Of a DNA stretch of 64,000 bases, positions 1 through 59,983 are shown one piece after another. How positions within the stretch are numbered: position 1 is the stretch's first letter; each line of letters begins with the position of its first letter. A program made the position numbers and the translations under genes. The stretch is from Blepharisma stoltei ATCC 30299 (taxonomy: Eukaryota > Protista > Ciliophora). Below the pieces are notes generated by a model. That model had not been told where the DNA came from. It was given only the letters and a program-made list of their open reading frames with translations, and searched no databases. The DNA lies in NCBI GenBank assembly GCA_965603825.1, contig CBFDEM010000040.1, positions 620,001 to 684,000 on the forward strand, written 5' to 3'.

Positions 1-584
1 CATTAAGCTGGTTGCCTTTTAAGAATAAAATTTTTAGGGTTTGGCGAATATCTCGAGGGTTGATTTGTTCGATACTGTTGTTTTCTAGATAAAGCTCATC
101 AATCTTATATAAAAATTACATCTGTTGCAGAAATGCCTTGGATTTGAGAAATCTGGTTCAAAGATAAGTTTACTAATTTAAGATTCCCTAAGGGTTGCAA
201 AGGCTTCATTGAAGTTATTTTATTTCCTTCAGCCTTTAAAACTTGGAGATTCTAAATGCAATTTACCTTATATCCAGAAATTCACTCAAGGGTTTCTATT
301 CGATTAAAGCTGATAACAAGCCTAACCAATGAAGGAATCACTAATCCATCCAAGCTTGAAATAAAATTGCAGGAAATATCAAGTTCTTTTAGATCTTTAA
401 GCTTATCAAAAGTTCCTCTTGGAATAACTTCTATCAAATTGCTTGAAAAAACAATACTCTTCACCTTTGAAAATTGATTGAGAGGACAGAGACTGCGAAT
501 ATTTGCTTTTATCATTTCGATCAGATAGATTTTGTCTGGCTTTTCTTGATTTTGCTGAATTATGAGGGCTGGAGTGAGTTCCAT
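1..584 (-). CDS. Leucine-rich repeat protein (3' end outside window); introns 252-266 (15 nt) and 104-119 (16 nt)
   Basis: LxxLxLxxN-type repeats (LKELDISCNFI, LVISFNRI, LKLVNLSLNQI, IDELYLENNSI). The frame continues through TGA 282-284 and is restored by removing GTAAATTGCATTTAG and GTAATTTTTATATAAG. Confidence 0.85.
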
Positions 585-648
585 TATAAATAAATGAAAA
601 ATGCGCTAAGAAGTAATGAATTATTTAATAGTAAAAGTGAAATTATAA

Positions 649-8562: not shown

Positions 8563-9297
8563 TGAATTAATAAGTATTAATGTCAACAATTTTAAGAAAA
8601 ATCAACTCTTTTAAAATAATGATGATGAGGTTGAGAAATTAGAGAAAACTCAAAATTACCAGGAAAATGGCAAATAAGATTTATAAAAACGGATTAATAT
8701 GATAATCTAAAGGCTACCTTTTTCTTTATATCAAGGCAATTTTAAACAGCAAATGTCATATGCAGAATTCAACAAATTTTTTTGTAAAAATTTAATCACT
8801 TTTTAAAAAATAATTTTTATTCCAAAATTTTATTTACTTTTTTATTGCCTTCTCACAAAAGTCAATTGGCTTTAACTAACTAATTTTATTTTTTATTATT
8901 TATTAAAAATGCAATTTTATATTAAAATATTATTGCCGAAAAAAGCAAATTCAATCCTACTCAAGATTCTTTAGTTCTAATATACTAAAGTATTAAAATG
9001 TTGATAAGGAGTATATGATCAGTATATTTAGCATATAATAATAATAATAAAATGTCGATATGTCAGGATATTTATAAATATTCGAGATACCTAATCGCAT
9101 GAATGATAATAACTCAGAGTTTAGATTAGTATATTTATGTTTTTGTGATTTGAAAGCCAAAAGATATTCATGATGAATCGATCAAAAATTTCGTTTATAT
9201 GTAATACAAAAACATTATTGAGATTATTATGAAATATAATTTGAGTTCAATCATTTCTTAATGATTTTCTAGGTTTTATATTTTTAAGTTATGATAA

Positions 9298-17199: not shown

Positions 17200-17591
17200 T
17201 ATTTATTAATTATTAATCCAAAAACTGATTTATGGCTGATTTCATATAAGCTTAAAAATTAAAAAAGAAAATATGCTAGATAAATAGAAAAATGGACTTT
17301 ACCATAATTAAGGGATTTTCTATTTTCTATAATTTATAGTAAGTCTTTGATCAGCTATAGCAACATAAAACAATTATCGATAATTAATAGCTATAAAGCA
17401 TTCTCCCCAGGCTTTCTTAAAAACATCAAAGGTTTTCTTTCATTATTTCTATATCATTTATACGTTTTTTCTCCAAACACATGCCTAATAAATAAAAATA
17501 AAGGGCATTCGCTATTATATAGCAACAAATAATCTATTAATTTTAGTAGCAGGTGCTATAAAAGACACTATAGCAAAATAATACAAAAATA

Positions 17592-22533: not shown

Positions 22534-23114
22534 TTAGAAGCATTTCTTTTGAGTTTGGTTACCTTTGTTATCCAACGCAATTGTATTTCTTTTTGGGGCT
22601 GATTGAGGGCTGTTAAACTCTGGGCAACATTTTGCAGCGATTTCTCTGAATAATTGTTCAACCTCGTAGTTCATTCTGGCTGATGTTTTAAGATATATAG
22701 CTCCAATTAAGTTAGCAAAATATTTAGCTTCTTCAAGAGAAACAGCTTCATTTTCAACTAAATCCTTTTTATTTCCTGCAATTATAACAACTATGTCTTT
22801 AGGCCCAAACTCTTGTAATTCCCAATGTCATCTTTTAAGGCTTTCAAAGCTTTCACGCTTAGTAATGTCATAAGTCATGATTACGGCGTTGGCGTCTCTG
22901 TAATACATTATGGCTAAATTGTGATATCTCTCTTGTCCCGCTGTATCCCAGATGTTGAATTTTATGGTCTTGTCGTTGAATTGGAGATACTTGACCATGT
23001 AAGAGATGCCGATTGACGACTCTCGTTCAGGGAAGGAATCAGCGACGAATCTTCTAATAAGGCTGGATTTGCCTACGCCGGAGTCCCTTTTATTTGGGTT
23101 TGGCCACCTTGCAT
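22534..23114 (-). pseudogene. Rab5-like GTPase pseudogene (duplicate of 24669-25277)
   Basis: A 13-nt deletion just after MQGGQTQIK removes VVLL and frameshifts to an early TAG. The C-terminus is KKCF instead of KKCC. The ORF track start at 23139 is TTG, not ATG. Confidence 0.85.
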
Positions 23115-24668: not shown

Positions 24669-25277
24669 TTAGCAGCATTTCTTTTCTTTTGCTGCCTGAG
24701 TTTGGTTAACTTTTTTATCCAGCGCAATTGTATTCCTTTTTGGGGCTGATTGAGGACTGTTAAGGTCTGGACAAATTTTCGCAGCGATATCTCTGAATAA
24801 TTGTTCAACCCCGTAGTTTGTTTTGGCTGATGTTTTACGATATATAGCTCCAATTGAGTTAGCAAAATCTTTAGCTTCTTCAGGAGGGACAGCTTCAGTT
24901 TCAACTAAATCTTCTTTATTTCCTGCAATTGTAACAACTATGTCTTTAGGCCCAAACTCTTGTAATTCTCGATGCCATCTTTGAAGGCCTTCAAAGCTTT
25001 CACGCTTGGTAATGTCATAAGTAATGATTGCGGCGTTGGCGTCTCTGTAATACATTTTGGCTAAACTGTGATATCTCTCTTGTCCCGCTGTATCCCAGAT
25101 GTTGAATTTTATGGTCTTGTCGTTGAATTGGAGATTCTTGCCCATGTAAGAGGCGCCGATTGTTGCATCTCGGTCAGTTTTGAAGTTATCAGCGACGAAT
25201 CTTAAAACAAGGCTGGATTTGCCTACGCCGGAGTCCCCAAGCAAAACGACTTTTATTTGAGTTTGGCCACCTTGCAT
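24669..25277 (-). CDS. RAB5: Rab5/Rab22-family small GTPase (202 aa)
   Basis: GDSGVGKSS, TIGASY, WDTAGQERYHSLAKMYYR (Rab5-clade signature), GNKED, TSAK, C-terminal CC. The ATG is at 25277. Confidence 0.88.
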   Translation of the reverse strand: MQGGQTQIKVVLLGDSGVGKSSLVLRFVADNFKTDRDATIGASYMGKNLQFNDKTIKFNIWDTAGQERYHSLAKMYYRDANAAIITYDITKRESFEGLQRWHRELQEFGPKDIVVTIAGNKEDLVETEAVPPEEAKDFANSIGAIYRKTSAKTNYGVEQLFRDIAAKICPDLNSPQSAPKRNTIALDKKVNQTQAAKEKKCC

Positions 25278-39873: not shown

Positions 39874-42800
39874 TTAAAAATTATAGCTCACTCTTAATAA
39901 TTTTTTGCCTTCAGCTCCTGGGTTAATTTTTCTTTTTAATGTCTCTTCTTCATACGTCTTATCTATATTAGCTAAACTTGGGTCTTTGTTAATAATTTTT
40001 TCGATTAACTCATCAATATTGTTGCCACCAAGCTTATCCCTTGCCTTTTCTGTTAAGTCCATCCTGGAATTATCTCTAGATAATATTGAAGATAGGGGCA
40101 GTATTCCTCCACTTGCCGTGCTAAAGTGATTGTCTATCTCTTCAGCATCACAATAGCTAAATTGATGCTCCTTAATGAATACTGTCAATTTTCTTGTGCT
40201 AGAACATTTGTAAAGCACAATGCCTCGAATGATTACACTACGAAAATGACTGTGTTTAAATCTGAAGGCAATGTCCATATATTTCTTGGAGTAGATCTGT
40301 CAAAGAGCATCATTAGCTCTTTCAAGTACTTCCTTATAATTAGCAACGTGTAAGATTTTAAATTCATGAATAATGATGGTAGAGGATTCTCCTGGATTTG
40401 GAATAAAAATACCATCAGTTTTTTCCCCGAAATTATTAGCTGTCCCTATATGCAATTTATATTTAGGTCTTAAGGCTTGCTCTAATGACATAAGCACTAT
40501 TCCTCCTGTATAAGTTTGGAAAAAAGTTTCATTTATGTTTAAATTGCTGTCTATTTTATTAAGTAGCTCAACTTGAATAAGACTCTCGAGCTGCAATTTG
40601 TCCTCTAAACAATCAATATATTTATTTATCCACATAAAACGATTAATATTGTTTTCCCCAATTGCTTTATCGATTCATGTGTTAAACAATTTTTCATAAA
40701 AATATATCTTTATTTCTTTATTTGGGACTAGATAGACTTTATTTCTCATAAGGTGTCAAGTATCCAGCATGAAGCAGTAGCACACAAGCATCATCTTTAG
40801 CTCTTATTTGATCATATATTGGCCTATCTAAAACGAGATATCCAGCCTTCATTATTTCAAATATTTTATGATTAGGATCAATAGTATTAAACACAGAAAT
40901 AAGCAGGTCTGGGTCATGTTCATTACGCCAATAAGTTTGTAGAGGTGCTATATTCTGCACTGAAGCGCTTGATAAACAATTCATTACCGACAAAGGGTTG
41001 TAAATATTTTGTCTCCCAACCGTTTACCCACCATATCATTGTTTTATCAATTGCTTCTGCTGTATTAAATGTGCAAGTGATTTATGAGCCAAATGGCGTT
41101 CTATTAATTCATCAACTTCCGGTTCAGTGAATCCAAAGTAATCAGATAAATAATTATCCAAAACAGTGGAAGAAATAAAATGCCCTGAAGGAAATATTTC
41201 AATCAGCGGATAATAATAAACTCCAGTTACAATTATTTTCCTAATATAATAATGCTGCCCACAGACTAGTGAACCCAGCATTATTCTTAGAAGATCTATC
41301 ATGTTATGCCGCTGCTCTATATCAGTCCCTGCGTTTCTAATATTACAATCATAGTCATCGATAATTAAAATAACGCTCTGATTATGAATCATATTTAGCA
41401 TGATAGCCAGGTCTTGCAATACTTTATATATGTTTATTTTAGACCTATTTGATAGATATAGTCTAAATAACTTCACTTCCTCAGGTAAATCTATTTTATT
41501 TTTATCAATAATTTTTTCCAAACCTTCAGTTGTTAGATCCCTAAAATTTGTATATATTGAAGAATCTCTTAATTTTTGCTCTAAATATTGATGATATGAA
41601 AGAACATGCTCACGTAATGTTTTTGATAGCGCAATCTTGATCTCTTCATAATAAATTTCAGCATTTGAGGTTCAAATCTTAGGAAATACAAATAAAATAG
41701 TCGGGATTTTTCCAGCGAACATTGTATACTTCTCTTTATCTGCAATCATTATGTTTTTACGCCTTCTATCGTCCGAGTCGCTTTTATCAGTGCTATTTCT
41801 TTTCCCAGTAAATAAATATAAATTTAAGAATTGTTCGTGTCAATTTATCTGAGGATTTAGGAATGCTTGGAGCATGCTCATGTTAAATGATTTACCCCAA
41901 CCTGTTGGTCTAGTAATAGCAATATGTGTATTATTGTCGTCTAAAATTGCCTTTATAAGCATTGTTTTGTCAACAATAATAGTGTCTTCGTCGACTGCTC
42001 TTTTAAAACTTTGAATTGTAGAGTTTATCTTACAATTTTTTTTGACCTTAATGAGTGATTGATATGTCGAAGGCAATTCAGTTGGTGTATTTAATAGATC
42101 AGAATCTGATTCTCCTTTTTCCTTGAATGAATCGAGAAATTGAAGTGCATCATCTAATTTATTATTGTCTTGGTACATTGATAATACACACAATTGGCTT
42201 ATATTCAGTTTCTTTGCTAAAAATCCTTCTCCACCTTCCAAAATCGGCCATAATGACAGTTTTGCAATAAGCTCGTTTAAAATTGCCTTTTCTATCATTT
42301 TTAGTAATTCCGAACTAAAATTGTTTCTAAGACTCTCAATGTTTTCCTCCTCAGTAAGATTGATTCCTAAATCTTCAAAGATAGCCAATATTTTATTACT
42401 TCAGTTCGCATCAAAGTATGAAAATTCATTTAAATAGTTGCAATTTCCTGTGGAAGTCAGCATTATTGCGTTGAATATCAACCATAGCCAGCTTTGGGAC
42501 GTATTCCTACTCTGCTTGATGCTGAGCGAATCGTTTATTATAGCTAATGGGAAAAGCCCTCCAATGGTATATAAATCTCCATTAGAATTTTTATATGAAA
42601 TTTGTGTTTTCAATAAAAATTTTACCAAGGCTGGCAAATTATAATTATTACCAGACGAATCGACCATATAAATTAACTCAGAGGAGTTAGACAGAGGCTC
42701 TCCATCAAGGCTTGTATAGTTTTTGGGAATAATTACCATTGATTGCCATATATAATTTTCTTTAGCTTGTTCACCCGGCTGATTTTTGTCATTTATATTC

Positions 42801-43078
42801 CAAAAAGAAACAATAGGCTTTTTTAGTTCTTCACAGTCCCTCCTGACTATTTTTTCGAGTTGTGTCAGGCAAATTAATATACCATTAATTTCATCACTAG
42901 AGGCGGGGGAATAATTGAATATAGCATCTATGCTTTTAATATGGACTCTGCCTTTGTAAATTGATTTGAGCACTCTTTTAATGTCATAAGCAGATAAGCA
43001 GCATTCAGTTGAGCTTAAGTAGTCAGAACTTTGAAATCTTTTAAAAACCTCATAAAGGGGCTTTTCCAAACTTTCCAT
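39874..43078 (-). pseudogene. Copy A: pseudo-protease + AAA-ATPase-like + PD-(D/E)XK nuclease gene, disrupted
   Basis: IVDKT, RPTGWGKSFNMSML, IIDDYD, FGFTEPEV, LLLHAGYLT, KTDGIFIP..IIIHEFK, ALWQIYSKKY. Premature TAA at 41024-41026 and a +1 frameshift near 40740. Confidence 0.8.
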
Positions 43079-43621
43079 ATTTAATTATTATTTGTTGAAT
43101 AAAGGCAATAAGTTAAATTCATATATCGAAATTAATTCTTGAATCAATTATAAATAGAAAATTAAATTAATTGCAGGATAAAGGTTTTTGCATATAAATA
43201 ATTTGTATATCTAAATTAAAAGAAATTTTCTTAATTTTCAGAAGGATTTAACATTGGATTTAATTAAGCTTAATGTCCAGCATCATCAGAACAATTTTTT
43301 CCAAAGCATCTAATCTTCTATTCATTGAGATTTTAATAACTTTAATTTTATTTTTGCAAAAATTTATGCAGAATAGAATATATAATTTTGCTAGATCCAA
43401 ATGAATCTTCCACTCTGAGGTCTGCTTAAACTGTTGTCTTGGCCAATAGCAAGTTCATCTATAAATTACTTTGAAAAACTTTCTGGCTAAAGCTTTGTAT
43501 AAAGATCACATATTATTACTTGATAATGATACATATTTTACTATTCATTTTAGGTTCTGGGAAAGTTAATTTTAAAATACTTATAAGATATTTTATACTT
43601 TGAAATGAATAAAAATCAAAA

Positions 43622-43735
43622 TTAAGTATTATAGGTAGGAATTTTTGACTTGATAAAGAATCAATTTATTCGCCTCCTTGCTCTTCTTGTGCCAATAATA
43701 CGTTTATAATGTTTCTAACATAATTTTCTAGATAT
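43622..43735 (-). pseudogene. Decayed 3' fragment of the PACRG-like gene
   Basis: Matches 59285-59400 (...EEQGG.E....IKSKIPTY.T*). A shorter copy lies at about 53896-53955. Confidence 0.75.
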
Positions 43736-43909
43736 TTTTACAATATCCATATCTTCTAATTTTCATTAAATGCTTTAATCCTCGGCACGTTTCGGAGCTA
43801 TAAATAAATGTTTTAATTAATAGGAAAAAAATAATAGTCCCATTTTTTCTCTATGAGATTGTAATTTTCAGATTTTTATGACCGTGATAATCAATTAAAA
43901 TTATTAGTA

Positions 43910-46900
43910 TTATTTTTTTCCCCTTTTGGTTCCTTCAGCTCCTGGGTCAAGTTTTCTTTTTAATGTCTCTGCTTGATGTGTCCTGTCCATATCAGCTAAA
44001 CTTGAGTCTTTCCTTATAAGTTTTTCGATTAATATACTAATATTTCTCCCGCCAAGTATATCCCTTGCCTTTTCCGTAGATTCAGCACTACATTTATCTC
44101 TACACAATGCTGAAGATAGGGTCAGTATTCCTCCATTTATCGTGCTAAAGTGCTTATCGATCGCTTCAGCAATATCATAATTAAATTTATGTTCCTTAAT
44201 GAATACTTTCCAACTTCATTCAGGAGGGTTTCTGTAAAACACAATACCTCGAATAATCACACTACGGAAATGACTATGTTTCGAGTGTAAGGCAATATCT
44301 ATATATTTCTTGGAGTAGATCTGCCAAAGAGCATCATCAGCTTTTTCCTGCACTAAATCATCGTAAGCAAATTCTAATTTTTTAAGTTCATGAATAATGA
44401 TAGTAGAGGATTCTCCTGGATTTGGAATAAAAATGCCATCAGTTTTTTTGCTAAACTTATTAGTTTCTATATACAATTTATATTTAGGTCTCAATGCTTG
44501 CTCTAATGCTATAAGAGCTATTCCTCCTGTATAAGTTTGGAAAAAAGTCTCATTCTTACTGCTATGGTCTTTTATCTTGTCTAGTAGATCAGTTTGAATA
44601 AGATTTTGAAGCTATTCTTTATCCTCTAAGCAATCAATATATTTATTTTTCCACGTAAAATGATTAATATTATCATTCTTAGCTACTTTATTGATTCATG
44701 CCACAAATAATGTTTCATAAAAATATCTTCTTATTTCTTTATTAGGGACTACATAGACTAAGTTGTGTTACTTATTTTCATAGGGTGTCAAGTATCCAGC
44801 ATGAAGCAGTAGCGCACAAACATTATCTTTGATTCTTATGTCCTGATATAATGGCCTATCTAAAGCAAGATACCCAGCTTTTATTCTTTCAAATATTTTG
44901 TTATCAGGTTCAATAGTATTGAATACTGAAATGAAAAGCCTTTCGCCATCTACATTATGCCAATATGTGTGGAGAGGTGCCTGATAAATCTGAGAAGCGA
45001 TTGATAAGCAACTTAGTATTGAAAAGGGGTTATAAATTTTTTGTCTTCCAACCCTATACCCATCATATCATTGTTTTATCAATTTTTTCTGCTCAACTAT
45101 ATTTGTATGTTGGTCTTGTACCAAATATTGTTCAAGTAATTCGTCAACTTCGGATTCAGTAAAACCAAAAAATCAGAGTAAAAATTATTTAAAACCGTAA
45201 AAGGAGTAAAATTTTGACTAGGAAATATAGCAAGAAGCGGATCATAATAAACTCCAGTTACAATTATTTTCCGGATATAATATAAATCTTGATAAACTAG
45301 AGGATAAACTATATCTCTTAAAAGCTCTCTAGTTTCTGTTCAAACTCTCTATTTGCCGCTGTCCGTTTATAATTACTATCGTAGTCATCTATAATAAAAA
45401 TGACCGGTTCATTATGAATCATATACAGCATTCTGGCCAGGATATTCAATGCTATGCATATATTTATTTGAGAAAAATCTGATAGATAAAGTCTATATAA
45501 CCTTATTTCCTTAGGTAATACTATTTGATTTTGATCAATTATTTTTTCCAAAAAAAATTTGATTGTTGCACCCTTAAAGTCTACTCTTATTGAAGAGTCA
45601 CTTATTTTTTGTTCTAAATATTGACGATATGAAGAAATATGCTCTCATAATATCACTGCTATTGTAAGCTTGATTGCTTCATACATTTCAGCATTTGAAG
45701 GATAAATCTCGGGAACTTGAAATAAAATAGTAGGAATTTTTCCTGCAAATTTTCTATACTTACCATCATCTATTTTCATAATTTTTTTACTTTCCCCACC
45801 AGTAAATAAGTATAAGTTTGCGAATTCTTCAGACTCGCCTCTCTGAGGATTTAGAAATGCTTGAAGCATACTCATGTTCAGTGATTTGCCCCAACTTCTT
45901 GGTCTAAGAATAGCAATTTTATAGGTAGAATCTTCTAAAATTGCTTTTATAAACAAAGTTTTGTCGATATAAATATTGCCGTTGTCGACTATATGTTTGA
46001 AATCTGCACATGAAGTATCGATCGAGCAATTGGCTTTCACCTTAATTACTGAATGAGGCGTTGGAGGCGATTCATCTCTATTTATTCTTGAGGAAATTGG
46101 AGTCTTAAATATATCATGTTCTATTTCTTGGCTTTTTCTTAATAAGTCTATAAATTGGAGAGCATCATCCTCTTTGTTATTGTTTTGGTAATCTGATAAT
46201 ACACACAATTGGGTTATGTTCAAAGTTGATAAAAAGCTTACTTGATCTTCAAAAATCAACCATGAAGATAATTTTATATGTAATTCGCTTAAAATTGCCT
46301 TTTGTATCATATCTAATCATTGAGGACGAGGACTTATAATAAAATTTTCAATTTCTGCACACTTAGCAAAATTGATGCTTAAATCTTCTAAAGTAGCTAA
46401 TATTTTACTAGCTCAGTGAACGTCAAAATTTGAAAAATCGTTTAAATAGTTACAATTTCCCGATGAAATCAGCATTACTGTATTGAATATCAGCCATAAT
46501 CAGCTTTGGGAGGGATTTCCGTGCTGCTTAATGCTATATCACATATTATAGCTGATGGAAAAAATCCTCCAAAAGTATTTGATATCCCATTAGGCTTTGT
46601 ATATGGAATTTGTGCTTTCAACAAAAATTTCATCAAATCTGGCAAATTATAATTATTGCCCGATGAATCTACCATAAAAACTAACTCAGAGTCATTAGAA
46701 AAAGACTCTCCATCACAATTTGTATAGTTTTTGGGAATAATTACCATTAATTGCCATATATAATTTTCTTGAGCTTGTTAACCTCTCTGAGATGCATTTT
46801 TGTCACTTATATTGATCTTCCAAAACGAAACAATAGGCTTTTTTAGTTCTTTATTATCCCTCCTGACTATTTCTTCGATTTTCGCCATACAAGCTAGCAC

Positions 46901-47098
46901 CCCATTTATTTCATCGGAAGTGGCGGGAAAGTGATTTAAAGGAGTATCTATTCATGCAATATAGATTCTGTCGTGGTAAATTGATTTAAGCACTTCTTCA
47001 ATTCCATAAGCAGACAGGCAATATTCTGCTGAGCTTGAGCGGTCATAGCCTTGAAAATTCTTAAAGACATCATAAAGGCGCTTTTCCAAACTTTCCAT
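43910..47098 (-). pseudogene. Copy B: pseudo-protease + AAA-ATPase-like + PD-(D/E)XK nuclease gene, disrupted
   Basis: Same motifs (YIDKT, RPRSWGKSLNMSML, IHELK). Frameshifts near 46535 and about 45340, TAA at 44768-44770, TAG at 44612-44614. Confidence 0.82.
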
Positions 47099-47637
47099 AT
47101 TTTGATTATTTTTTTAATTTTTTGGAGACTAAAAAAATAGCCAAAAATAAATGTTGTGAAATTTTGACAAACATGCCAAAAATTATAAAAATATTATAAA
47201 AATTGGAAAATACTAAAAATTTGTAAAATAGAATAAGATCGTAAAGTTTTGGAAAAATTGCTATAAATATCTAGAATTAGCTTATTCAAATGCTTCTTGA
47301 CCTTATTTTGCTAGTGCACGATTCGGAGATGCATATATTCAGAGTTTTGCTTTCAAGATTGTACAAATTTAAGCCTCTTTTTAGAAAAGCACCAAAAAAC
47401 CTGCACCATCTGAATTCCATGAAACCCTGAAACTATCTTACCCCAATACTGTCTGAACTTACGCTTTCGGAACACGATTGAGAGATCCATATTTTCAGAG
47501 CTTTTTTAAAATATAAGAACCCATATGCTACATTTTCCCCCAAAAAGCACCCAAAGCCAAGCCACAGCAGTTTCTATGAAACTCTTGAGCTCGTCTACAT
47601 TAAATTAATTTTTATTATTGACTCATATTTTTATTTA

Positions 47638-48129
47638 ATGAAGTACATTGGTGCAACTCATTATAAAACTGGATACCAGCTCTATTATGCTCATAGACTA
47701 GCAGATCTAAAAACCAAGCCAGATTTCATATTTGAAATAAGTGAATTTTTTAAGCTTGCAGGTGCTGGATGAAGGAATCTGCCCAAAGAGGAGAAAGAGG
47801 TGTGGATTTCAAGAGCAGAAGAGGAGAAAAAAGAAAATTCGAAGAGGGAGCCAGCTTTCATTGCAATTCCATCAAAAAATAAACATTCTGAAAGTGCAGA
47901 ATCCTGTTCATCAAGCGAAAGCTATGGTGAGAAAAAACATAAAAGGAAGAGAGATAAGCAAAAGGACAAAAATAAGTCTAAATCTGATAAAAAATTCAGG
48001 AAAAGCCACATAAGCAAAAACGAGTCTGAATCATCTGAAAGCGATAAAAGTGGCACAGAGAGCGATCATAGCTCTGGCAGAAAGAAGCAGAAAAATATCA
48101 GATTAAATAAGCACTTCAGATTTCAATAA
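47638..48129 (+). CDS. HMG-box protein (163 aa) with Lys/Ser-rich tail
   Basis: KTGYQLYYAHRLADLKTKPDFIFEISEFFKLAGAG[TGA=W]RNLPKEEKEVWISRAEEEKK fits the HMG-box consensus; in frame with ORF 47800-48129. Confidence 0.75.
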
Positions 48130-48335
48130 TAATAATCATATAAATATTTAGATGGATAAATATTTTTGAGTTATAATTTTTGAACTTTCTATTAAATACT
48201 TTAGTTCTCATTTACACATTTTGGAGCTATAAATAAATGTTTTAATTAATAAAAAAAACAAATAGCAGTCCCATTTTTTTCTGTATGAGATTCGAATTTT
48301 GATATTTTTATAACCATGATAATCAATTAAAATTA

Positions 48336-51300
48336 TTAGCCCCCTCTGAAGAATTTTGTGCCTTCAGCTCCTGGGTCGGTTTTTCTTTTTAATGTCTCTT
48401 CTTCATATGTCTTATCTATATTAGCTAAACTTGGGTCTTTGTTAATAATTTTTTCGATTAAATCATCAATATTGTTGCCACCAAGCTTATCCCTTGCCTT
48501 TTCTGTGGAGTCTATCCTGCAATTATCTCTACACAATACTGAAGATTGGGACAGTATTCCTCCATTTGATGAACTAAAGTATTTGTCTATCTCTTCAGCA
48601 TAATCATAGTTAAATTTATGCTCCTTAATAAATACTTTCCAAATTCCTTGAGTAGGACTTCTGTAAAGCACAATACCTCGAATAATAACGCTACGAAAAT
48701 GACTATGTTTCAAGCGTAAAGCGATATCCATATATTTCTTTGAGTAGATCTGCCAAAGAGCATCATCAGCTTTTTCCTTCACTTTTTCATTGTGAGAAAG
48801 CTCTAATTTTTTAACTTCATGAATAATAATGGTAGAGGATTCTCCTGGATTCGGAATAAAAATGCCATCAGTTTTTCTACCGAACCTATTCGCTTCCCCT
48901 ATATGCAATTCATATTAGGTCTCAATGCTTGTTCTAATGCTATAAGAGCTATTCCTCCTGTATAAATTTGGAAAAAAGCCTCATTTTTGATGTAACAGTC
49001 AGTCATCTTATCAAGTAGCTCAACTTGAATAAGATATTGAAGCTGGTCTTTGTCCTCTAAACAATCAATATATTTATCTATCCATGTAAAAAGATTGATT
49101 TTATTTTTCTCAATTGCTTTATCGATTCATATCATAAACAATTTTTCATAAAAATATCTCTTTATTTCTTTATTAGGGACTACATAGACTAAGTTGTGTG
49201 ATTTATTTTCATAGGGTGTCAAGTATCCAGCATGGAGCAATAACGCACAAACATTATTTTCAATCCTTGTTTCCACATATATTGGTCTATTTGAAACAAG
49301 ATACCCAGCTTTCATTATTTCAAATATTTTGTTATGAGAGCTAATAGATTTGAATGCTGAAATGAAAAAATTTTCATCGTCATATTAAACCAAATGAGAT
49401 TCAAGTAATTTGTCAATTTCATATTCTGTAAAACCAAAAAAATCAGAGAAATAATTATTCAAAACAGTAAAAGGAGCAAAAGGTGCCCCGCTAAATATCT
49501 CAATTAGCGGATCATAACAAACTCCAGTTATAATTAATTTTTCGATATATCTAGGACGGTAAACTAGAGGATTCAACATCTCTATTATAAGGCGTATCAT
49601 TTTATGTCGTTGCTCCATATCTGCTGCCCCTGTAATATTGATATCGTAGTCCTCTACAATTAAAATAATGGGTTTTTCATGAATTCTATATAACATGATA
49701 GCCAAATCTCTCAATGCATCTAAATTTATTTTAGAGCTATCTGATAGATATAGTCTGAATTGGGTCATTTCGATTGGCAAATCTATTTTATTCTGATCGA
49801 TAATTCTTTCTAAATTTCTAATTTTAAGATCCTTAGTGTCTAGGGAAATTGAAAAATCTTTTATTACTTTTTCTAAATATTGGCGATATGAATGAATGTG
49901 CTGTTGTAATGTTTCTCATATGCTATATTTGATCGCTTGATGGTATTTTTCAATATTTGGATTTCTAATCTTGGGAAATGCAAATAAAATTGTAGGAATT
50001 GTTCCAGCTTTCTCTATATACTTCCCATTATCTGCATTTATTATATCCAAGTTATTTAAGCTACACCCAGTAATAAGTATAAATTTTCGAATACTCCATT
50101 TTTGCCTGCCTTAGGCTTAGGATTTAGAAATGCTTGTAGCATGCTCATGTTCAGTGACTTACCCCAGCCTCTTGGTCTCATAATAGCAATATTATCATAA
50201 TCTTGTTCAAAAAGTGCCTTTATAAACATTGTTTTGTCAACATAAAGTTCTCCTCCATCAATTATTTGCTTAAAATTTGAATTCTGAGTGCTGAACTTAA
50301 GATTTTTTTGACCTTAATAACTGAATGATATGTTGGAGATGATTCATTTTCATATAATCTTATTGAAGTTGGTGTATTAAATTGATAAGGATCTGATTCT
50401 TTGCTTTGCTTTAATGAGTCGATAAACTGGAGTGCATCACCCACTTTATTATTGTCTTGATACTCTGATAAGGCACATAATTGACTTATATTCAAATTAT
50501 TTGGTAAAAATTTTACTTGATCTTGCAAAATAGGCCATGATGATAATTTTGCATATAGCTCGTTTAAAATTGCCTTTTCTATCGTTGTTACCCATTTGAA
50601 ATCTAAATTGAATCATAAATTCTCAGATTTTTGCTCTAGAGAAAAATTAATGTTTAAATCCTCAAAAATGGCTAGTATTTTATTGATTCACTTCTCATCA
50701 AAATTTGAAAACTCTCTTAAATAGTTGCAATTTCCTGTTGAAATCAGCATTAATGTGTTGAATATCAATCATATCCAGCTTTGGGAGCAATTCTCGTGCT
50801 GCTTACTACTAAGCTTATCATATATTATAGCTGATGGAAAAAGCCCTCCAAAAGTATCTGTATTCCTCTCCGATTTTTCATATGAAATTTGTGTTTTCAA
50901 CAGAAATTTTAACAAACCTGGCATTTTATAATTATTCCCAGATGAATCGATCATAAAAACTAACTCAGAGGAGTTAGACAAGACTCTCCATCAAGATTTG
51001 TATAGTTTTTGGGAATAATTACCATTAATTGCCATATATAATTTTCTTCAGCTTGTCCACTTATCAGCATTGAGTTTTGGTCAGTTGTATTGATTTTCCA
51101 AATAAAAACAATAGGCTTCTTTAGTTCTTTATGATCATCCTTGACTATTTTTTCGATTTCTGACATATAAGACAGCACGCTAATGATTTTATTGATAGAG
51201 GCGGGAGAATAATTGATAGGAGTATCTGTGCCTTGTATATGGATTCTGTCACTGTAAATTGATTTAAGCACTTCTTTTATGCCATAAGCAGATAAAGAAT

Positions 51301-51366
51301 ATCTTTCTAAGCTTAAGCGATAATAACTTTAAAAAATTTAAAAAGGTCATAAAGCCCCTTTTCCAT
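48336..51366 (-). pseudogene. Copy C: pseudo-protease + AAA-ATPase-like + PD-(D/E)XK nuclease gene, disrupted
   Basis: RPRGWGKSLNMSML, IVEDYD, IHEVK. Frameshifts near 51330, 50982, 50305 and 48912, and an internal deletion at about 49383 removing the WYDGY/YNPF segment. Confidence 0.82.
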
Positions 51367-51885
51367 ATTTTGATTATATTTCATTTTTTGTTTACTAAAG
51401 GAAATAAGTTAAATTCATACTTCGAAATCAAGTCTTGAATAATAATTATGAATAAATAAGTTAGTGAAAATTTAATTAATTGTAGGATTAAGATTTTTTG
51501 CTGATCATATATAATTTGCTGCTATGTAAGTGAGAGGTAGCAGAAAGTAATCTTTATTTTTAAATAACAAGCAATAACAACTTGGCTCTAAAGCAGATGA
51601 TGCTTTCTATCATTACAACTTGCTCCAACATGTTAGTGCTTTTCGTCTACACACTAATTGCTCCAAATAACAATTTGCTTGGAGTTATGCTCATTATGCT
51701 TAGCTTTTTCAATTTAGCATCATAAATACTAAGAATGATAATAAATAACAAGGTTTCATAATGACTTATCATTTTCAAACTAAAAAGCAAAATTCTCGAT
51801 TATTAATGTAATTTATGGAATCTGATCCCCCACGTTTAAGGATAATCAGAATTTCCAAAATTAATAAATATTTATTTGTGAAGTC

Positions 51886-52443
51886 ATGGATACAGGAGAA
51901 ATGTATACTTAACTTAGTTCCTTTTTCTTAAAAATCATCGTGTATGGATGTAAAAGTTCTGGACGATCTAATATTATACGCAGATATACAGATGAAGCTT
52001 TTGAAGAAAAAGGGCTCAAATATAATTATGATTTTGTAAGTTTCATGAAGAAAATAAAAGACAAAGTAGTGCAAGGAAAATTGTTGAGGCTTCAGATATG
52101 AGACGCAAATAATATAAATTGGCACAGGGATTTTATAAAATCAGCGCACGGTTGTGCAATTATAATAGATTTAACAAATCCTGATTCATTTCATAGCGCA
52201 TTATATTGAAAAAGAGAACTTGATAAATACTTTTTAAGTAAAAGCCCAGAAATCATATTAATTGGAAATAAAGCAGATCTTAAAAGTAAGAGATTTTTCA
52301 CATTTGAAGAAGCCAAAAAGCGTGCAGATAGCTTGGAAATGTTTTATGTTGAAGTATCAGCAAAGACAAACTTAAATTTAGAAAAATCATTTGAAATTTT
52401 AATTAGAAATATCCTAAATAGAATCTCCAAGAAGGCAAGCTAA
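51886..52443 (+). CDS. Divergent Rab1-like GTPase-fold protein (not in ORF track); introns 51903-51917 and 52036-52050
   Basis: LKIIVYGCKSSGRSNI, LQI[W][19 protein letters not shown]. Open after splicing. Lacks AGQERF and a C-terminal Cys. Confidence 0.8.
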
Positions 52444-52555
52444 TCATAGAATTAAATCATCTAGTAGCATATATATATGTTGCATCAAAATAATTATTTT
52501 TAGCCTTCAAGTAATAAACATAATCTATATAGCTTAGAATTAAAATAAAATACAG

Positions 52556-52779
52556 AATATATATTTCTTGGAGTAGATCTGCCAAAAAGCATCATCAGCT
52601 TTTTCCTGCACTAAATCATCGTAAGCAAATTCTAATTTTTTAAGTTCATGAATAATGATAGTAGATGATTCTCCTGGATTTGGAATAAAAATGCCATCAG
52701 TTTTTTTGCTAAACTTATTAGCTTCTATATACAATTTATATTTAGGTCTCAATGCTTGCTCTAATGCTATAAGAGCTAT
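52556..52779 (-). pseudogene. Isolated ~220-bp fragment of the PD-(D/E)XK nuclease core, near-identical to copy B 44300-44520
   Basis: About 3 mismatches versus copy B by eye; flanked by unrelated sequence. Confidence 0.85.
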
Positions 52780-54142
52780 AGGAAATTGGAGGCATGAGTT
52801 GTAAAGGGGAAATTCAGCTCAACTGTACGCTTGGGTGCAATGCTGCGGGTTCGATGGCTGAGCTGCTTCTTCACCGTATGTAAAATCTCTGAAAATTCAA
52901 AAAATCCTCTGAACGTCTTCCAAGCGGTTTACGACGCGCTCTTAATGCTTCTGATAATTTTCCAGCTCTTCAAAAATGGTTTCTGAACTGCTTGATTAAT
53001 CATTTTATGGAAGTTCACCATAATTGATTTTCAGGACGACTCTCAAAAAGGAATTAATCCTTGCATCATAATTATAAATAGATAAATTAAATAAATTGCA
53101 GGATAAAGGTTTTTGAATATAAATAATTTGTATATCTAGTTGAAAAATTTTTCTTATTTTTCATAAGGATTTAAAATTGGCTTTGACTAAGCATGGTGTC
53201 CATCATCAGAACAATTTTTTCAAAGCATCTTATCTTTATTCATTGAGATTATCATAGCTTTAATTGCCTTAAGCACTCTTCCTTATTTTGGCTGGCTGAT
53301 ATAATAAATATATTTCTCAGCTAAGGTTTGGTCTTCGGTGGGCTAACTTCGAGGATGTGATTTTATTATAACTGGCAAGTTTTGCTAGCATAAGTGCTAG
53401 ATACCACTTTGGTTATGATTAGAGGCTAGCTCAAGCATACTTCAAAGCTGGATATACCTAGTCTAAGACATCTTCTTTATGCTGCTTCACTACACTATGA
53501 TCAACTTTTTTAATTGAGTAATTTTATTGGTTTCCCAACGAGTTCAAGCATTACTTAGACAATTTTCTCAGACAGATGATCATTTTTTTGGCTAATATAT
53601 CGAAATTTTCGAAACCTGTGGATATTTATTTTTGCAAAAATTAATGCAGCAATAGAATATATAATTTTGCTAGATTCAAGTGAATCTTCCACTCTGAGGT
53701 CTGCTTAAACTGTTGTCTTGCGCCAATAGCAAGTTCATCTATAAGTTACTTTGAAAGCTTGTTGGCTAAAGCTTTGTATAAAGACTACATATTATTATTT
53801 GATAATGATACATATTTTATTATTCATTTTAGGTTGTGGGGAAAGTTAATTTTAAAATACTTATAAGATATTTTATACTTTGAAATGAATAAAAATCAAT
53901 TTATTCGCCTCCTTGCTCTTCAAGTGTCAATAATACGTCTTTAATGTTTCTAATGCGCATATAAATATTTAAAGGGATTCTATTTTTGAGTAATAATTTT
54001 GGATTTTCATTAAATGCTTTAATCCTCGGCATTTTTCGGAGCTATAAATAAATGTTTTAATTAATAGAAAACTTATTTTTTCTCTATGAGATTCTAATTT
54101 TCAGATTTTTATGACCGTGATAATCAATTAAAATTATTAGCA

Positions 54143-57100
54143 TTATTTTTTTTCCCTTTTGGTTCCTTCATCTCCTGAGTCATATTTTCTTTTTAATGTG
54201 TCTGCTTGATATGTTCTGTCCATATCAGCTAAACTTGAGTCTTTCCTTATAATTTTTTCGATTAATTCACTAATATTTCTCCCGCCAAGTATATCCCTTG
54301 CCTTTTCTGTGGATTCTGCACTGCCTTTATCTCTACACAGTACTGAAGATAGGACCAGTATTTTTCCATTTGTCGTGCTAAAGTGTTTATCAATCTCTTT
54401 AGCATCGTGAAAATTAAATTTATTTTCCTTAATGAATACTTTCCAATTTCCCTCAGGAGGGTTTCTGTAAAACACAATACCTCGAATAATCACTCTACGG
54501 AAATGACTATATTTCTCTCGTAAGGCAATATCCATATATTTCTTGGAGTAGATCTGTCAAAGAGCATCATCAGCTCTTTCCTGAACTTTATCATCGTAAG
54601 CTGATTCTAATTTTTTAAGTTCATGAATAATGATGGTAGAGGATTCTCCTTGATTTGGAATAAAAATTCCATCAGTTTTTTTGTTAAACTTATTAGTTGC
54701 CTCTATATACAATTTATATTTAGGCTTTGGTGCTTGCTCTAATGCTATAAGAGCTATTCCTCCTGTATAAGTTTGGAAAAAAGCCTCATTTTTACTGCTA
54801 CGGTCTTTTATCTTGTCTAGTAGATCGGTTTGAATAAGATTTTGAAGCTGTTCTTTATCTTCTAAGCAGCCAATATAATTATTCATTCACATAAAAGGAT
54901 TAGTATTATAATTGTTCCCTTCTTTATTGATCCATGAAACAAATAATTTTTCATAAAAATATCTTCTTATTTCTTTATTAGGGACTACATAGATTGAGTT
55001 TTTTGGCTTATTTTCATAGGGTGTCAAGTATCCAGCATGAAGTAATAGCACACAAACATTATCTTCAATTGTTGTGTCTTGACTTAATGGCTTGTCTAAA
55101 ACAAGATACCCAGATTTCATTATTTCAAATATTTTATTATGAGAGTCAATAGTATTGAATACTGAAGTGAAAAGCTTTTGGTCTTTTTTATTATGCCAAT
55201 ATGTTTTAAGAGGTGTTGCATTATGCTTCGAAGCACTTGATAAGCAACTTATTATTGAAAATGGGTTGTAAATTTTTTGTCTTCCAACTCTATAACCATC
55301 ATATCATTGCTTTATCAATTTTTTCTGCTCAACTATATTTGTATGCGAGTCTTGTGCCAAATAATGCTCAAGTAATTCATCAACTTCGGATTCAGTAAAA
55401 CCAAAAAATTCAGAGTAAAAATCATCTAAAACCGTAAAAGGAGTAAAACATTGATCAGAAAATATATCAAGTAGCGGATCATAATAAACTCCAGCTACAA
55501 TTATTTTCCTAATATATGCATTGATTGTACAAACTAGTGGATTAAGCATATATCTTAAAATCAATGTAGCTTCTTGTCTTTGCTCTGTATTTACCTCTGC
55601 CCGTTTATAATTACTATCGTAGTCATCTATAATTACAATAACCTGCTTTTCATGAATCATATACAGCATGGTAGCTAGATCATTCAATGCTGTATATATA
55701 TTTATTTCAGATCTATCTGATAGATAAAGTCTAAATAACTTCATTTCCATAGGTAAATCTAATTTTGCCTGATCAATAATTTTTTCCAAATCTTGAAGTG
55801 TCAGATTACTGATTGAAGAATGAATTATTTTTCCTTCTAAATATTGTCGATATGAGGAAACATGCTGCTGTAATGTTTTTCCTATTGCAGTCTTGATTTC
55901 TTCATGCATTTCAGTATTTGAAGGATTAATCTCGGGAAATGGAAATAAAATAGTAGGAATTGTTCCTGCAAAATTTCTATATTTACCATCATCTATTTTC
56001 ATAATTTTTTTGCACTTTTCATTATCTAAGTTGCCCAAATTAGTATTATTTCTTTCCCCTGTAAATAAGTATAAGTTTGAGAATTCTTCAGACTTGCCTC
56101 TCTGAGGATTTAGAAATGCTTGGAGCATGCTCATGTTCAGTGATTTGCCCCAACATCTTGGCCGAATAATAGCGGTTACAGAGCTAGAGTCTTCTAAAAT
56201 TGTCTTTATAAAAATAGTTTTGTCCACATAAATATTGCCGTTGTCGACTATATGTTTAAAATTTGCACTTGAAGGATTAAATGAACAATTTGGTTTTACC
56301 TTAATTATTCAATGGGGCGTCGGAGGCGATTCAACTTCATTTATACTTGTGGGAATTGGAGTTTTCAATAGATCTGAATCTAATTCTTGGCTTTTCCTTA
56401 ATGAGTCGATAAATTGGATAGCATCATCCTCTTTGCTATTGTTTTGTAACTCTAATAATATACACAATTGACTTATGCTCAAATTGTTTGCTAAAAAGCT
56501 TGCTTGATCTTCTAAAATTATCCATGATGACACCTTTGAATGAATCTCGGTAAAAATTGCGTTTTGTATCATGTTTATCCTTTCAGAACTAATAATAAAT
56601 TTTGAATTTTCTACCCACTTAGCAAAATCGATGCTTAAATCTTCGAGAATAGCTAATATTTTATTAGTTCAGTGCACGTCAAGATTTGAAAATTCATTTA
56701 AATAGCTACAATTTCCTGAGGAAATCAGCATTACTGTATTGAATATCAGCCATAGTCAGCTTTGGGAGGGATTCTTGTGCTGCTTAATGTTTAGTGTATC
56801 AAATATTATAGCTGATGGGAAAAATCCTCCAAAAGTATTTGATCTCCCATTAGACTCTGTATATGAAATTTTTGTTTTCAACAGAAATTTTAACAAAGCT
56901 GGCATTTTATAATTATTCCCAGATGAATCGACCATATAAACTAATTCAGAGGCATTAGAAAAAGACTCTCCATCAAAATTTGTATAGTTTTTGGGAATAA
57001 TTACCATTAATTGCCATATATAATTTTCTTGAGCTTGATGACCTCTCTGAGATGCATTTTCGTCACTTATATTGATTTGCCAAAAAGAAACAATAGGCTT

Positions 57101-57358
57101 CTCTAGCTCTTGACGATTAACCCTGACTATGTCTTCGATTTTCGCCATACAAACTAACACACCATTTATTTCATTGGAAGAGGCGGGAGAGTGATTTAAA
57201 GGAGCATCTACTCCTGCAATATAGATTCTGTCGTGGTAAATTGATTTAAGCACTTCTTCAATCCCGTAAGCAGACAGGCAATATTCTGCTGAGCTTGAGC
57301 GGTCATAGCCTTGAAAATACTTAAAGGCATCATAAAGGCGCTTTTCCAAAGTTTCCAT
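54143..57358 (-). CDS. Copy D (intact, 1071 aa): inactive CE-clan protease-like domain + AAA-ATPase-like (PF09820-type) + PD-(D/E)XK nuclease (PDDEXK_9-type) + basic tail
   Basis: All six ORF fragments are in one frame. The gaps were translated and contain only TGA, no TAA/TAG. No introns. Motifs: YVDKT, RPRCWGKSLNMSML, VIIDDYD, FGFTESEV, WYDGY, YNPF, LLLHAGYLT, VPNKEI, KTDGIFIP..IIIHELK, ALWQIYSKKY. Confidence 0.88.
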
Positions 57359-58405
57359 ATTTTGATTATTATTTTTAATTTTTTGGAGACCAAAATCGAT
57401 GTCGAAAAAAAGCCAATAAAATAAATAATTGTAAAATGTTGACAAACATGCAGAAAATCTATCAAAATTTATCTATATATTATAAAAAATTCGAAAAATG
57501 ATAAAAATTTGTAAAATAAAATAAGAGTGTTGTCAAAAAGTCAAAAGTTTGGAAAATTTGCAATCAAAAATTTATAGCTTGCCCACTTTGTTGATTTTCA
57601 TGATGATTATAATTTTTTCATTGGACTTCATGCAGTATAAAAATTAAGTCCTTAAAATAGTTTATTTTAATTTAATATCTAGGAGAAACCCTTATATAAG
57701 CTTTAATAATTTCAGATAATTACTTCTAGTTTTAGATAATTAGCTCAGAAATATTTTTGGAACTATTTTTTATGATAAATTGGATAATTTAGTAAGCTCA
57801 GGCTATATTATTTTTATTGGAATTAACATTTATTTCATCTCGTTTGATTGTGAATTCATGGAAATGTTAATTCATACTTCGAAATCAAGTCTTGAATAAT
57901 AATTATGAATAAATAAATTAGTCAAAGTTTAATTAATTGTAGGATTAAGATTTTTTGCTCATCATAATTAATTTGCTGCTATGCAAGTGAGAGGCAGCAG
58001 AAAATAATCTTTATTTTTAAATCAGAAGCTATTATGACTTGGCTCTAAAGCAGATAATGCTTTTCTGTCATTAAAATTTGCTTCAGCACGTTAATGCTTT
58101 CCGTCTACACACTAGTTGCTCAAAATAACAATTTGATAGGAGTTATCTCATTATTTAGCTTTTTCAAAAAATTTTTCATTTATCATCAATAATGGTAACA
58201 AATAGCTAGGTTTCGTAATGACTTATCATTTTCAAGCTAAGAATCAAAACTCTCAATTATTAATTTAATTATAAAATTTAAGCTTATTTTATTTATTTAA
58301 GATTTTATTAAGCTAAAAAAATTTAAGTTTAATCTATAGGATCTGATCTTCCATGCTTAAGGATAATGAGAATTTTTAAAAATAATAATATTTATTTGTG
58401 AAGTC

Positions 58406-58957
58406 ATGGATATAGGAGATTAGTATACTGTACTTAGTGCTTTTTTCTTAAAAATTATACTGCTAGGATGCCAAAGTTCTGGAAAATCTAATATTTTACT
58501 CAGATATACAGATGGAGTTTTTGAAGAAAAAGAGCTAACATATAATTATGATTTTGTAAGTTTCATGAAGAAAATAAAAGACAAAGTACTACAAGAAAAA
58601 TTGATGAAGCTTCAGATATGAGACACAAGTACTATATACAGGAATTATTTTAAATCAGCGCACGGTTTTGCAATTATAATAGATTTAACAAACCCTGATT
58701 CATTTCATAGCGCATTATATTGAAAAAAAGAACTTGATAATTACTTTTCAGGTAAAACCCCAGAAATCATATTAATTGGAAATAAAGCAGATCTTGAAAA
58801 TCAGAGATTTTTCACATTTGAAGAAGCCAAAAAGCGTGCAGATAGCTTGGAAATGTTTTATATTGAGGTATCAGCAAAGACAAACTGAAATATAGAAAAA
58901 TCATTTGAAATTTTAATTAGAAATATCCTACATAGAATCTCCAATAAGGCAAGCTAA
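58406..58957 (+). CDS. Divergent Rab1-like GTPase-fold protein (not in ORF track); introns 58423-58437 and 58556-58570
   Basis: [31 protein letters not shown]...YDF|KIK...KLQI[W][15 protein letters not shown]...IGNKADL...EVSAKTN...ISNKAS*. Confidence 0.82.
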
Positions 58958-59284
58958 TCACAGAATTAAATCATTTAGTAGCATATATATATGTTACATC
59001 AAAATAACTATTTTTAGCCTTTAAATAATAAAAATAATCTATATTGCTTAATAATTAAAATAAAATAAAGAATAGCATTTTAGGATATGGATAGCAGCTC
59101 CTCGATAATATGCTTTAAAATTTACTAGTTAAAGCTCTGTATAAGGAGTGCATATTTTATGCTTTAGGATACGTAGGATACACATTTTGGTTATCCATTT
59201 TAAGCTTCAGACCAAAGTAAAGATTTATAGCTAATTCTAAATTTATTTATGGAATATTTTATGTTTAAATTACACAAACCACTA

Positions 59285-59938
59285 TTAAGTATGATAGGTC
59301 GGGATTTTTGACTTGATAATAGGAACAATTTCTTCTCCTCCTTGCTCTTCTAGCGTCATTAATACTTCTAAAACTTTATCCCTATAATTTCTCTCATTCA
59401 TTTTCTTTCCTAGCTGCTGAAGAAACAGATGAACATGATTATTCAAATAAGGACCCACCAGTTCTGAAAGCAGCCTATATTGAACTTACTTTAATGTATC
59501 TAAAGCTGAACTGACGGCGCCTTTATCACTATTTGTCAAAGCTTGTCGTAAAGGCATTACTAATCTCGGAATTAGAGGTATTGTTTTTTCTACAGCGCCC
59601 TCAGCTGTCAACAGTTCTTTAGTCCCTTGACGAGATACAAACATATAAGGATGCTCAGTTTCTATGAGCCCTTCAAAAAGAGTAACCAAAAGAGGGTCAT
59701 AGCTTAGCTGAGAAGGCGGAGTTGACCATAACAAACTCATAGAAACAGATCCATGATTGATTCTGCATGGAATCCCACCTGCAGAGTATACATATCCAAG
59801 ATTTCTGTATAATATTTACGTTTTACTCTTATTTTTAGGCTTGAAAGGATCAGCTGCTTTAACTTGAAGTCTGTCACTAGGCTTAGAGCTAAAAGAGTTA
59901 GCTTTTTTCTTTTTAGATTCTTCTTGAGCTGGCCTCAT
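59285..59938 (-). CDS. PACRGL: PACRG-like protein (~207 aa); introns 59805-59819 and 59475-59489
   Basis: YSAGGIPCRINHGSV, YDPLLVTLFEGLIETEHPYMFVSRQG, LEEQGG..IIKSKIPTY. Confidence 0.88.
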
Positions 59939-59983
59939 ATTTTAACAAATATTTTATTTAAATAAATACTCAAAAAAGCATTA

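Follow-up and report, generated by a model that had tools for sequence, protein, structure and literature searches.

A decaying tandem array of bacterial-type ATPase-nuclease genes in the nuclear genome of the ciliate Blepharisma stoltei and its possible role in genetic conflict

The array, its intact copy and its paralogues

We analysed a window of 64,000 nucleotides (nt) from the ciliate Blepharisma stoltei, corresponding to positions 620001-684000 of contig 40 (841 kb) in a 41.46-Mb assembly of 64 contigs (G000). In it we found a tandem array of genes for proteins that combine an AAA-ATPase-like domain with a predicted PD-(D/E)XK nuclease domain. The somatic genome of Blepharisma uses UGA as a tryptophan codon and has introns of 15 or 16 nt (PMC9942806). 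Open reading frames (ORFs) of up to 2422 codons were present in the window once TGA was translated as Trp, and frames were fragmented otherwise. A tblastn search of the window with the intact copy D as query (TGA=Trp) located four co-oriented paralogues of about 3.2 kb, named A to D, and a fragment of 222 nt, all on the minus strand of 39874-57358; a preliminary description made from the DNA letters had proposed the same arrangement. All coordinates below refer to the window unless a contig is named.

Copy D (54143..57358, minus strand; tblastn match 54146-57358) is an intact, transcribed gene of 1071 codons ending in a TAA stop. Its continuous frame, for which at least six TGA-Trp codons had been predicted, contains exactly six (codons 201, 230, 350, 685, 824 and 934), and its product is identical to the deposited 1071-amino-acid (aa) B. 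stoltei protein P0021. RNA contigs from four runs of one 2022 study tile copy D end to end (54106-57355). The same four runs gave no RNA contigs between the genes at 57535-58322. Within the adjacent Rab-like gene their contigs lack exactly 15 nt at 58556, which equals a Blepharisma intron in length. The spliced intron and the bare intergenic stretch indicate that these runs are indeed RNA and that D is transcribed, and since the RNA contigs skip no segment inside D the gene is intronless. The four copies had been described as intronless paralogues; of these D is intact, and A, B and C proved to be broken. At position 54557 the RNA contigs of three runs (X2-X4) have C for T, by which the TGA of the invariant Trp934 becomes TGG. 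This difference may stem from the allele of the other mating strain, or from RNA of copy B or of the fragment, both of which have TGG there.

Copy A (39874..43078, minus strand; tblastn match 39901-43078, 58-63% aa identity to D) has a frame open for 686 codons, covering the N-terminal domain and the ATPase, and is annotated as the 684-aa protein P0022. Its nucleotide alignment to D revealed that codon 689 is an in-frame TAA, that 11 nt are deleted at codon 782 and that more frameshifts follow towards the 3' end, which together put the nuclease part out of frame. Aligned in the same way, the pseudogene copy B (43913..47098, minus strand; 59-79% aa identity to D over pieces by tblastn, 86% at the nucleotide level) is interrupted by five frameshifts and three premature TAA or TAG stops, and the pseudogene copy C (48354..51372, minus strand; 51-70% aa identity to D by tblastn) shows six frameshifts and premature stops and lacks a segment of 162 nt. 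The 222-nt fragment (52558..52779, minus strand) corresponds to aa 868-942 within the nuclease domain with 87% aa identity to D; its nucleotide identity is 98.6% with copy B and 90% with D. The array is decaying: D alone is intact, A is truncated, both B and C are dead, and a fragment is left over.

The units of duplication exceed the genes themselves, a Rab-like gene and its upstream region being common to 51400-52559 and 57860-59074. Upstream of the Rab-like neighbour of D lies a PACRG-like gene (59200-59940, minus strand), and short copies of the 3' end of this gene occur downstream of D (53897-53940) and of B (43446-43709), marking segmental duplication units. The stretch 53052-53265 is 86% identical to 43130-43347, downstream of the start of copy A. 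Between the fragment and D, positions 53201-53841 are without a long ORF, yet show RNA contigs in four of four runs. A transposon was considered and rejected, as the flanks of D show just weak AT-rich inverted matches (the best 33 nt at 76%) and no terminal inverted repeats.

The family extends well beyond the window. A genome search for PF09820 gave 30 matches on nine contigs (10, 14, 22, 27, 32, 40, 54, 58 and 62), and the N-terminal domain described below was found together with PF09820 at these loci. At least 11 copies are open frames of 1036-1121 codons (TGA=Trp), about 12 more are split or partial, and the paralogues are between 25% and 72% identical to D. Each intact paralogue contains 5-15 TGA codons and no TAA or TAG. 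TGG and TGA alternate at conserved Trp columns, and the Trp of the WYxGY motif (W685 in D) is encoded by TGA in 11 of 11. The presence of TGA at conserved Trp positions indicates that the family has long resided in a TGA=Trp genetic code, in agreement with the adaptation to the host code proposed before. Pairwise ratios of nonsynonymous to synonymous substitution rates (dN/dS) were 0.36-0.66, with the minimum in the nuclease region and the maximum in the N-terminal domain. With one intact and three broken copies in the window and at least 11 intact and about 12 broken ones genome-wide, evolution of the family by birth and death is supported, and the rapid turnover that had been suggested is seen in both the copy counts and the dN/dS values. 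We found no literature on this ATPase-nuclease family in ciliates.

Two further loci carry one of the Pfam domains. A second, shorter PF09820 gene on contig 22 (G000:C22:337165-337719; L035 2511-3893, minus strand) has a 461-aa frame scoring 118 bits and is unmatched by the D protein at E<=1e-4. The six-frame genome search for PF08011 gave a sole, unrelated match on contig 56 (G000:C56:427280-427546, 59 bits). Both may represent separate acquisitions.

Domain architecture of the copy D protein

The AAA-ATPase_like domain PF09820 occupies aa 365-625 of D (55484..56266, minus strand), with 83.9 bits on the full-length protein and 69.8 bits on a stop-free piece; the Pfam gathering scores are 26.1 bits for PF09820 and 25.5 bits for PF08011. 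The Walker A motif RPRCWGKS (K405) and the Walker B motif VIVIIDDYD (D578/D579) are present, and their columns are invariant or nearly so in our alignment A3. All ten motifs quoted in the preliminary description occur in D in the order given there.

A PD-(D/E)XK nuclease domain of the PDDEXK_9-like type was assigned to aa 834-965 (54464..54859, minus strand) from a profile, the catalytic residues and a structural model. The profile, built from 18 bacterial PF09820+PF08011 proteins, gave a single alignment of 190 bits that joins aa 365-965 of D to positions 11-547 of 559. Its nuclease section alone scored 20.4 bits on D, compared with 9.5 bits for the best of 200 shuffles, and the conserved nuclease columns are filled in D by E858, E886, D896, E913-x-K915 and Q935 (E...D...ExK plus Q). 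An AlphaFold2 (AF2) model of the C-terminus of paralogue L031, which is 72% identical to D, reached a predicted local distance difference test score (pLDDT) of 83 and a predicted TM-score (pTM) of 0.82. All of its top structural matches were PD-(D/E)XK enzymes, with Z 9.9 to the Wolbachia CidB ND2 domain (root-mean-square deviation (rmsd) 3.5 Å over 156 residues), Z 9.0 to CinB and about 6.5 to EcoRV; for CidB ND2 and CinB together the rmsd was 3.5-3.7 Å over 146-156 residues at 15-18% identity. These residues and the model support a CifB-like PD-(D/E)XK nuclease domain in D in which all predicted catalytic residues are kept. The proposed combination of ATPase and PD-(D/E)XK nuclease is thereby borne out by Pfam, the collinear profile match and the structural model, and the suggested kinship to CifB by the structure of the nuclease domain.

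Searches of the N- and C-terminal parts of D against Pfam, PADLOC and NCBIfam gave no family besides PF09820. For the N-terminal domain, a language-model search (ESM Atlas) provided a lead to Peptidase_C48. An AF2 model of the N-terminus of paralogue L042 (pLDDT 69.7) was compared with known structures (Foldseek, VIA) and matched OtDUB with Z 15.1 (rmsd 2.8 Å over 164 residues), RickCE with 13.8, the deubiquitylase (DUB) domain of CidB with 12.6 and Ulp1 with 10.5. Altogether 85 chains were found at Z>=8, and all 50 entries shown were clan-CE proteases. Together with alignment A3 this suggests a clan-CE fold of the Ulp1/OtDUB/RickCE type at aa 1-250 of D (56609..57358, minus strand). In the same alignment, D has Ile114 at the column of the catalytic His and Ser200 at that of the Cys, and of the triad only Asp144 remains. 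His and Cys are likewise missing from the other Blepharisma copies in the alignment (Ile, Ala or Leu at the His column and Ser at the Cys column), while the motif HW / D / Q..DCG is kept in bacterial and some environmental ciliate homologues. Because the catalytic His and Cys are replaced, the domain in D is probably an inactive protease. It would have its fold in common with OtDUB, RickCE, SseL, ChlaDUB and Ulp1/SENP of clan CE; unlike these proteases, the Blepharisma copies lack the catalytic His and Cys and a Pfam C48 match.

At its C-terminus (aa 1054-1071; 54146..54199, minus strand) D ends in a basic tail, KRK-x10-KREKK, resembling a bipartite nuclear localization signal (NLS). According to alignments A3 and A4 a basic tail, often with the bipartite pattern, ends most eukaryotic members of the family and none of the bacterial homologues. 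Judged by this pattern, the tail may direct D to the nucleus. The earlier account recognized the ATPase and nuclease and missed the dead clan-CE domain, the NLS-like tail and the extent of the family, which occupies many loci and is common to other ciliates.

Relatives, bacterial origin and genomic surroundings

Relatives of D are numerous. A HMMER scan of 1.84 billion representatives returned 3937 of them, including some long proteins of the same layout; word-indexed searches returned just close Blepharisma paralogues or bacterial proteins of about 560 aa at 24-29% identity. Two environmental contigs with homologues also carry kinesin, Myb, MORN and PX genes (L048) or genes for uS5 and a PH-domain protein (L049), and the best named match of the uS5 on L049 was B. 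stoltei with 74%. From these neighbouring genes, and for L049 also from the uS5 match, we conclude that the hosts are related uncultured ciliates. The family genes on L049 form a tandem pair (6499-9591 and 10001-13027 of that contig). Both members of the pair have Gly where the nuclease should have its catalytic Asp, and protein P0063 of this contig retains His and Cys at the aligned protease positions. In this pair the decay of the domains is reversed compared to Blepharisma.

Among bacteria, a screen of one genome per species (185,579 species) for the Walker A variant RPR[RKG]WGK[TS]xN yielded 253 confirmed relatives. The best 80 of these 253 belong nearly all to Rickettsia, Tisiphia, Midichloriaceae, Cardinium, Coxiellaceae and Legionellales, besides a few unclassified metagenome-assembled genomes (MAGs). 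At the top of the list stood Candidatus Cyrtobacter zanobii, which lives in the ciliate Euplotes as an endosymbiont, together with a Midichloriaceae MAG. The 2000-aa Cyrtobacter protein (L054) is collinear with aa 10-995 of D (E 3e-51, 25% identity), has an intact HW / D / Q..DCG protease motif and is encoded on a bacterial contig with a DnaG-like primase and a YhgA-like transposase. Another bacterial group, P0041 and its kin, adjoins genes for Tn3 transposase, resolvase and Fic proteins.

The domain order of D is found in L054 and in the bacterial proteins P0041, P0080 and P0156. In contrast to D, these bacterial proteins keep the His/Asp/Cys triad, lack the NLS-like tail and have long extra C-terminal regions, such as an HhH motif in P0041 or ankyrin repeats in L055. 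Also related are the two-domain DUF1703 proteins (PF09820+PF08011). Those of Rickettsia, Tisiphia, Cardinium and Simkania share the core of ATPase, middle region and nuclease with D, collinear over about 600 residues. They are likewise expanded, single genomes of intracellular bacteria having tens of divergent paralogues; the expansion has been described in Cardinium cCpun, and the function of DUF1703 proteins is uncharacterized in bacteria too (PMC6387759). Compared to them, D has an additional N-terminal region of about 360 residues with the predicted clan-CE fold and the basic C-terminal tail, is encoded in the nucleus of a eukaryote with TGA=Trp, and lies out of reach of the Pfam PF08011 model.

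A phylogenetic tree (84 rows, 584 columns, LG+C20 with posterior mean site frequencies (PMSF)), with support from the Shimodaira-Hasegawa-like approximate likelihood ratio test (SH-aLRT), placed 12 Blepharisma paralogues in one clade (98). Together with 10 environmental eukaryotic sequences and L055, an 1830-aa Midichloriaceae MAG protein (486-5975) with C-terminal ankyrin repeats, they formed a clade (97) that was sister to Cyrtobacter and P0106 (99), followed by the P0041 group (97). This whole group nests among two-domain proteins of Rickettsia, Tisiphia, Bacteroidota, Cardinium and Legionellales. An origin of the family from intracellular bacteria of the Rickettsiales/Midichloriaceae type is well supported by these results, in line with the endosymbiont origin suggested earlier, which are read most simply as a transfer from a bacterium to a ciliate. 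The place of L055 in the tree possibly reflects a back-transfer, mis-binning, a closer donor or more than one transfer. It also fits the reverse course, in which the three-domain gene was born in ciliates and passed to endosymbionts, as does the finding that Cyrtobacter alone among named bacteria has the full N-terminal domain. We regard this reverse course as highly unlikely, since the ATPase-nuclease core is overwhelmingly bacterial, bacterial proteins with clan-CE domain, ATPase and nuclease (on the contig with Tn3, resolvase and Fic genes) branch outside the Cyrtobacter and eukaryote group, and the active protease triad is kept in the bacterial copies and partly lost in many eukaryotic ones.

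As the nearest relatives are bacterial, the array might also represent a contaminant or misassembled endosymbiont DNA. This explanation is hardly credible and already contradicted: the in-frame TGA codons at conserved Trp positions would be stops in Rickettsiales, ciliate genes surround the array on its contig of 841 kb, paralogues occur on nine contigs, and spliced RNA is present in the same runs. The flanking genes are ordinary ciliate ones, encoding a radial-spoke head protein, an EML-like protein, giant Laminin_G_3 proteins, a DegT aminotransferase and a PACRG-like protein. From these flanking genes, the TGA-Trp codons and the spliced 15-nt intron next door, the location of the array in the ciliate nuclear genome is supported. 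The preliminary description had raised both contamination and a silent copy D as possible objections; the former is contradicted by the flanks, the codons and the splicing, and D is transcribed.

Two Rab-like small-GTPase genes (51913-52440 and 58424-58954, both plus strand), 78% identical to each other, are arranged head-to-head with copies C and D. Both have lost the Gln of the switch-II motif DTAGQ (WDANNINW and WDTSTIY), and the P-loop of one reads GRS instead of GKS. The window also contains two Rab-like frames of more distant kinship (22648-23073 and 24747-25256, minus strand). A two-gene module with the Rab-like gene was considered and rejected: these genes adjoin C and D only and were absent at 16 other family loci fetched. 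At the other end of the window, two tandem paralogous frames (1345-8610 and 9973-17202, minus strand) of 2422 and 2410 codons (TGA=Trp) encode the giants with Laminin_G_3 domains.

Possible function and significance

We consider it rather probable that the window holds a decaying array of a Midichloriaceae-derived family whose product acts in genetic conflict as a nuclear, ATP-regulated DNA endonuclease. The D protein would enter a nucleus and might cleave DNA under control of its ATPase, and the dead protease domain might work as a module for regulation or for binding, of ubiquitin-like proteins for instance. The conflict itself could be defence against foreign DNA or intracellular bacteria, or the gene could be a selfish toxin. 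The retained catalytic residues, the tail, the turnover and the effector-like ancestry point to such an ATP-controlled endonuclease in the nucleus, and a conflict role in particular is suggested by the turnover, the elevated dN/dS and the tendency towards contig ends.

Several observations weigh against this reading. PADLOC-DB gave no match for D, its paralogue or the Cyrtobacter protein, and NCBIfam was blank as well. No partner gene is conserved across the family loci. A dN/dS below 1 together with many pseudogenes fits plain relaxed constraint equally well, and the tendency of the family clusters towards contig ends, with 13 of 13 lying in the outer 31% of their contigs, is suggestive only at n=13 clusters. 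The RNA contigs come from one study and give neither expression level nor stage. Both AF2 models represent paralogues of D and are based on shallow alignments of 9 and 18 rows. PF08011 had been expected beside PF09820, which did match; the Pfam model for PF08011 had no match on D (P0021) at E<=0.01, so the nuclease assignment rests on the other evidence given above. Pfam C48 (PF02902) remained below threshold on D and on the N-terminal pieces of four paralogues. The tree was obtained by a quick search with SH-aLRT support only, and with L055 inside the eukaryotic clade at an unresolved fork the proposed direction and number of transfers are provisional.

The same data might be explained by neutral relics, i.e. 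a transferred gene that was duplicated by unequal crossing-over and is decaying, with functionless open copies and incidental transcription. Of the copies, three out of four in the window and about half in the whole genome are broken, dN/dS is 0.36-0.66, and the protease domain is already dead, all of which would be expected of relics. At least 11 long reading frames have nevertheless stayed open despite their divergence, the Walker motifs and nuclease residues are retained, dN/dS is below 1 with its minimum in the nuclease, and an NLS-like tail was gained and then retained. On balance we find neutral decay unlikely.

A Cif-like toxin or toxin-antidote element, in which the nuclease would bias inheritance at conjugation and a linked or cis-encoded antidote would protect the carrier, is brought to mind by the resemblance of both end domains to modules of Wolbachia CifB. 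CidB and CinB (CifB) are the best structural neighbours of the family's nuclease domain, the CidB DUB is among the matches of the N-terminal domain, and CifB and the D family both trace to Rickettsiales; the birth-and-death turnover and the tandem arrays also suit a selfish element. The architecture differs, however: CifB has two tandem PD-(D/E)XK modules, in some cases followed by a C-terminal DUB, and its gene adjoins a cognate cifA-like one, whereas D has one nuclease, an N-terminal clan-CE domain and a central PF09820 ATPase that Cif proteins lack. The family loci have no conserved neighbour gene, the Rab-like genes accompanying C and D only, and terminal inverted repeats were not found. 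Among the neighbours of the family loci, where no search aimed at CifA homology was made, we saw no partner resembling CifA. We therefore hold a toxin-antidote role to be quite unlikely and do not claim membership in the CifB-type cytoplasmic incompatibility (CI) factors.

A more elaborate form of the defence scenario is speculative and in our view doubtful. Heterotrichs would have captured a Cif-like effector of deubiquitylase, ATPase and nuclease from a Midichloriaceae endosymbiont, added an NLS and diversified it as a family resembling innate immunity genes. The dead protease might then be a decoy or sensor of ubiquitin-like signals or pathogen effectors, and the ATPase might switch on the nuclease against bacteria, viruses or mobile DNA.

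Transfer of whole multidomain effector-type genes from an endosymbiont to a ciliate nucleus with subsequent expansion has rarely been documented. Here the donor lineage is traceable to Midichloriaceae, a family with members that live in ciliates. Adaptation to the host is visible in the TGA-Trp codons at conserved positions and in the NLS-like tail, and the protease residues have been lost stepwise across ciliate lineages. The family thus offers a tractable eukaryotic system for the DUF1703 ATPase-nucleases, which are expanded in Rickettsia, Cardinium and Bacteroides and are linked structurally to the Cif nucleases of Wolbachia. If a role in defence or drive holds true, it would represent a new kind of conflict system in protists.

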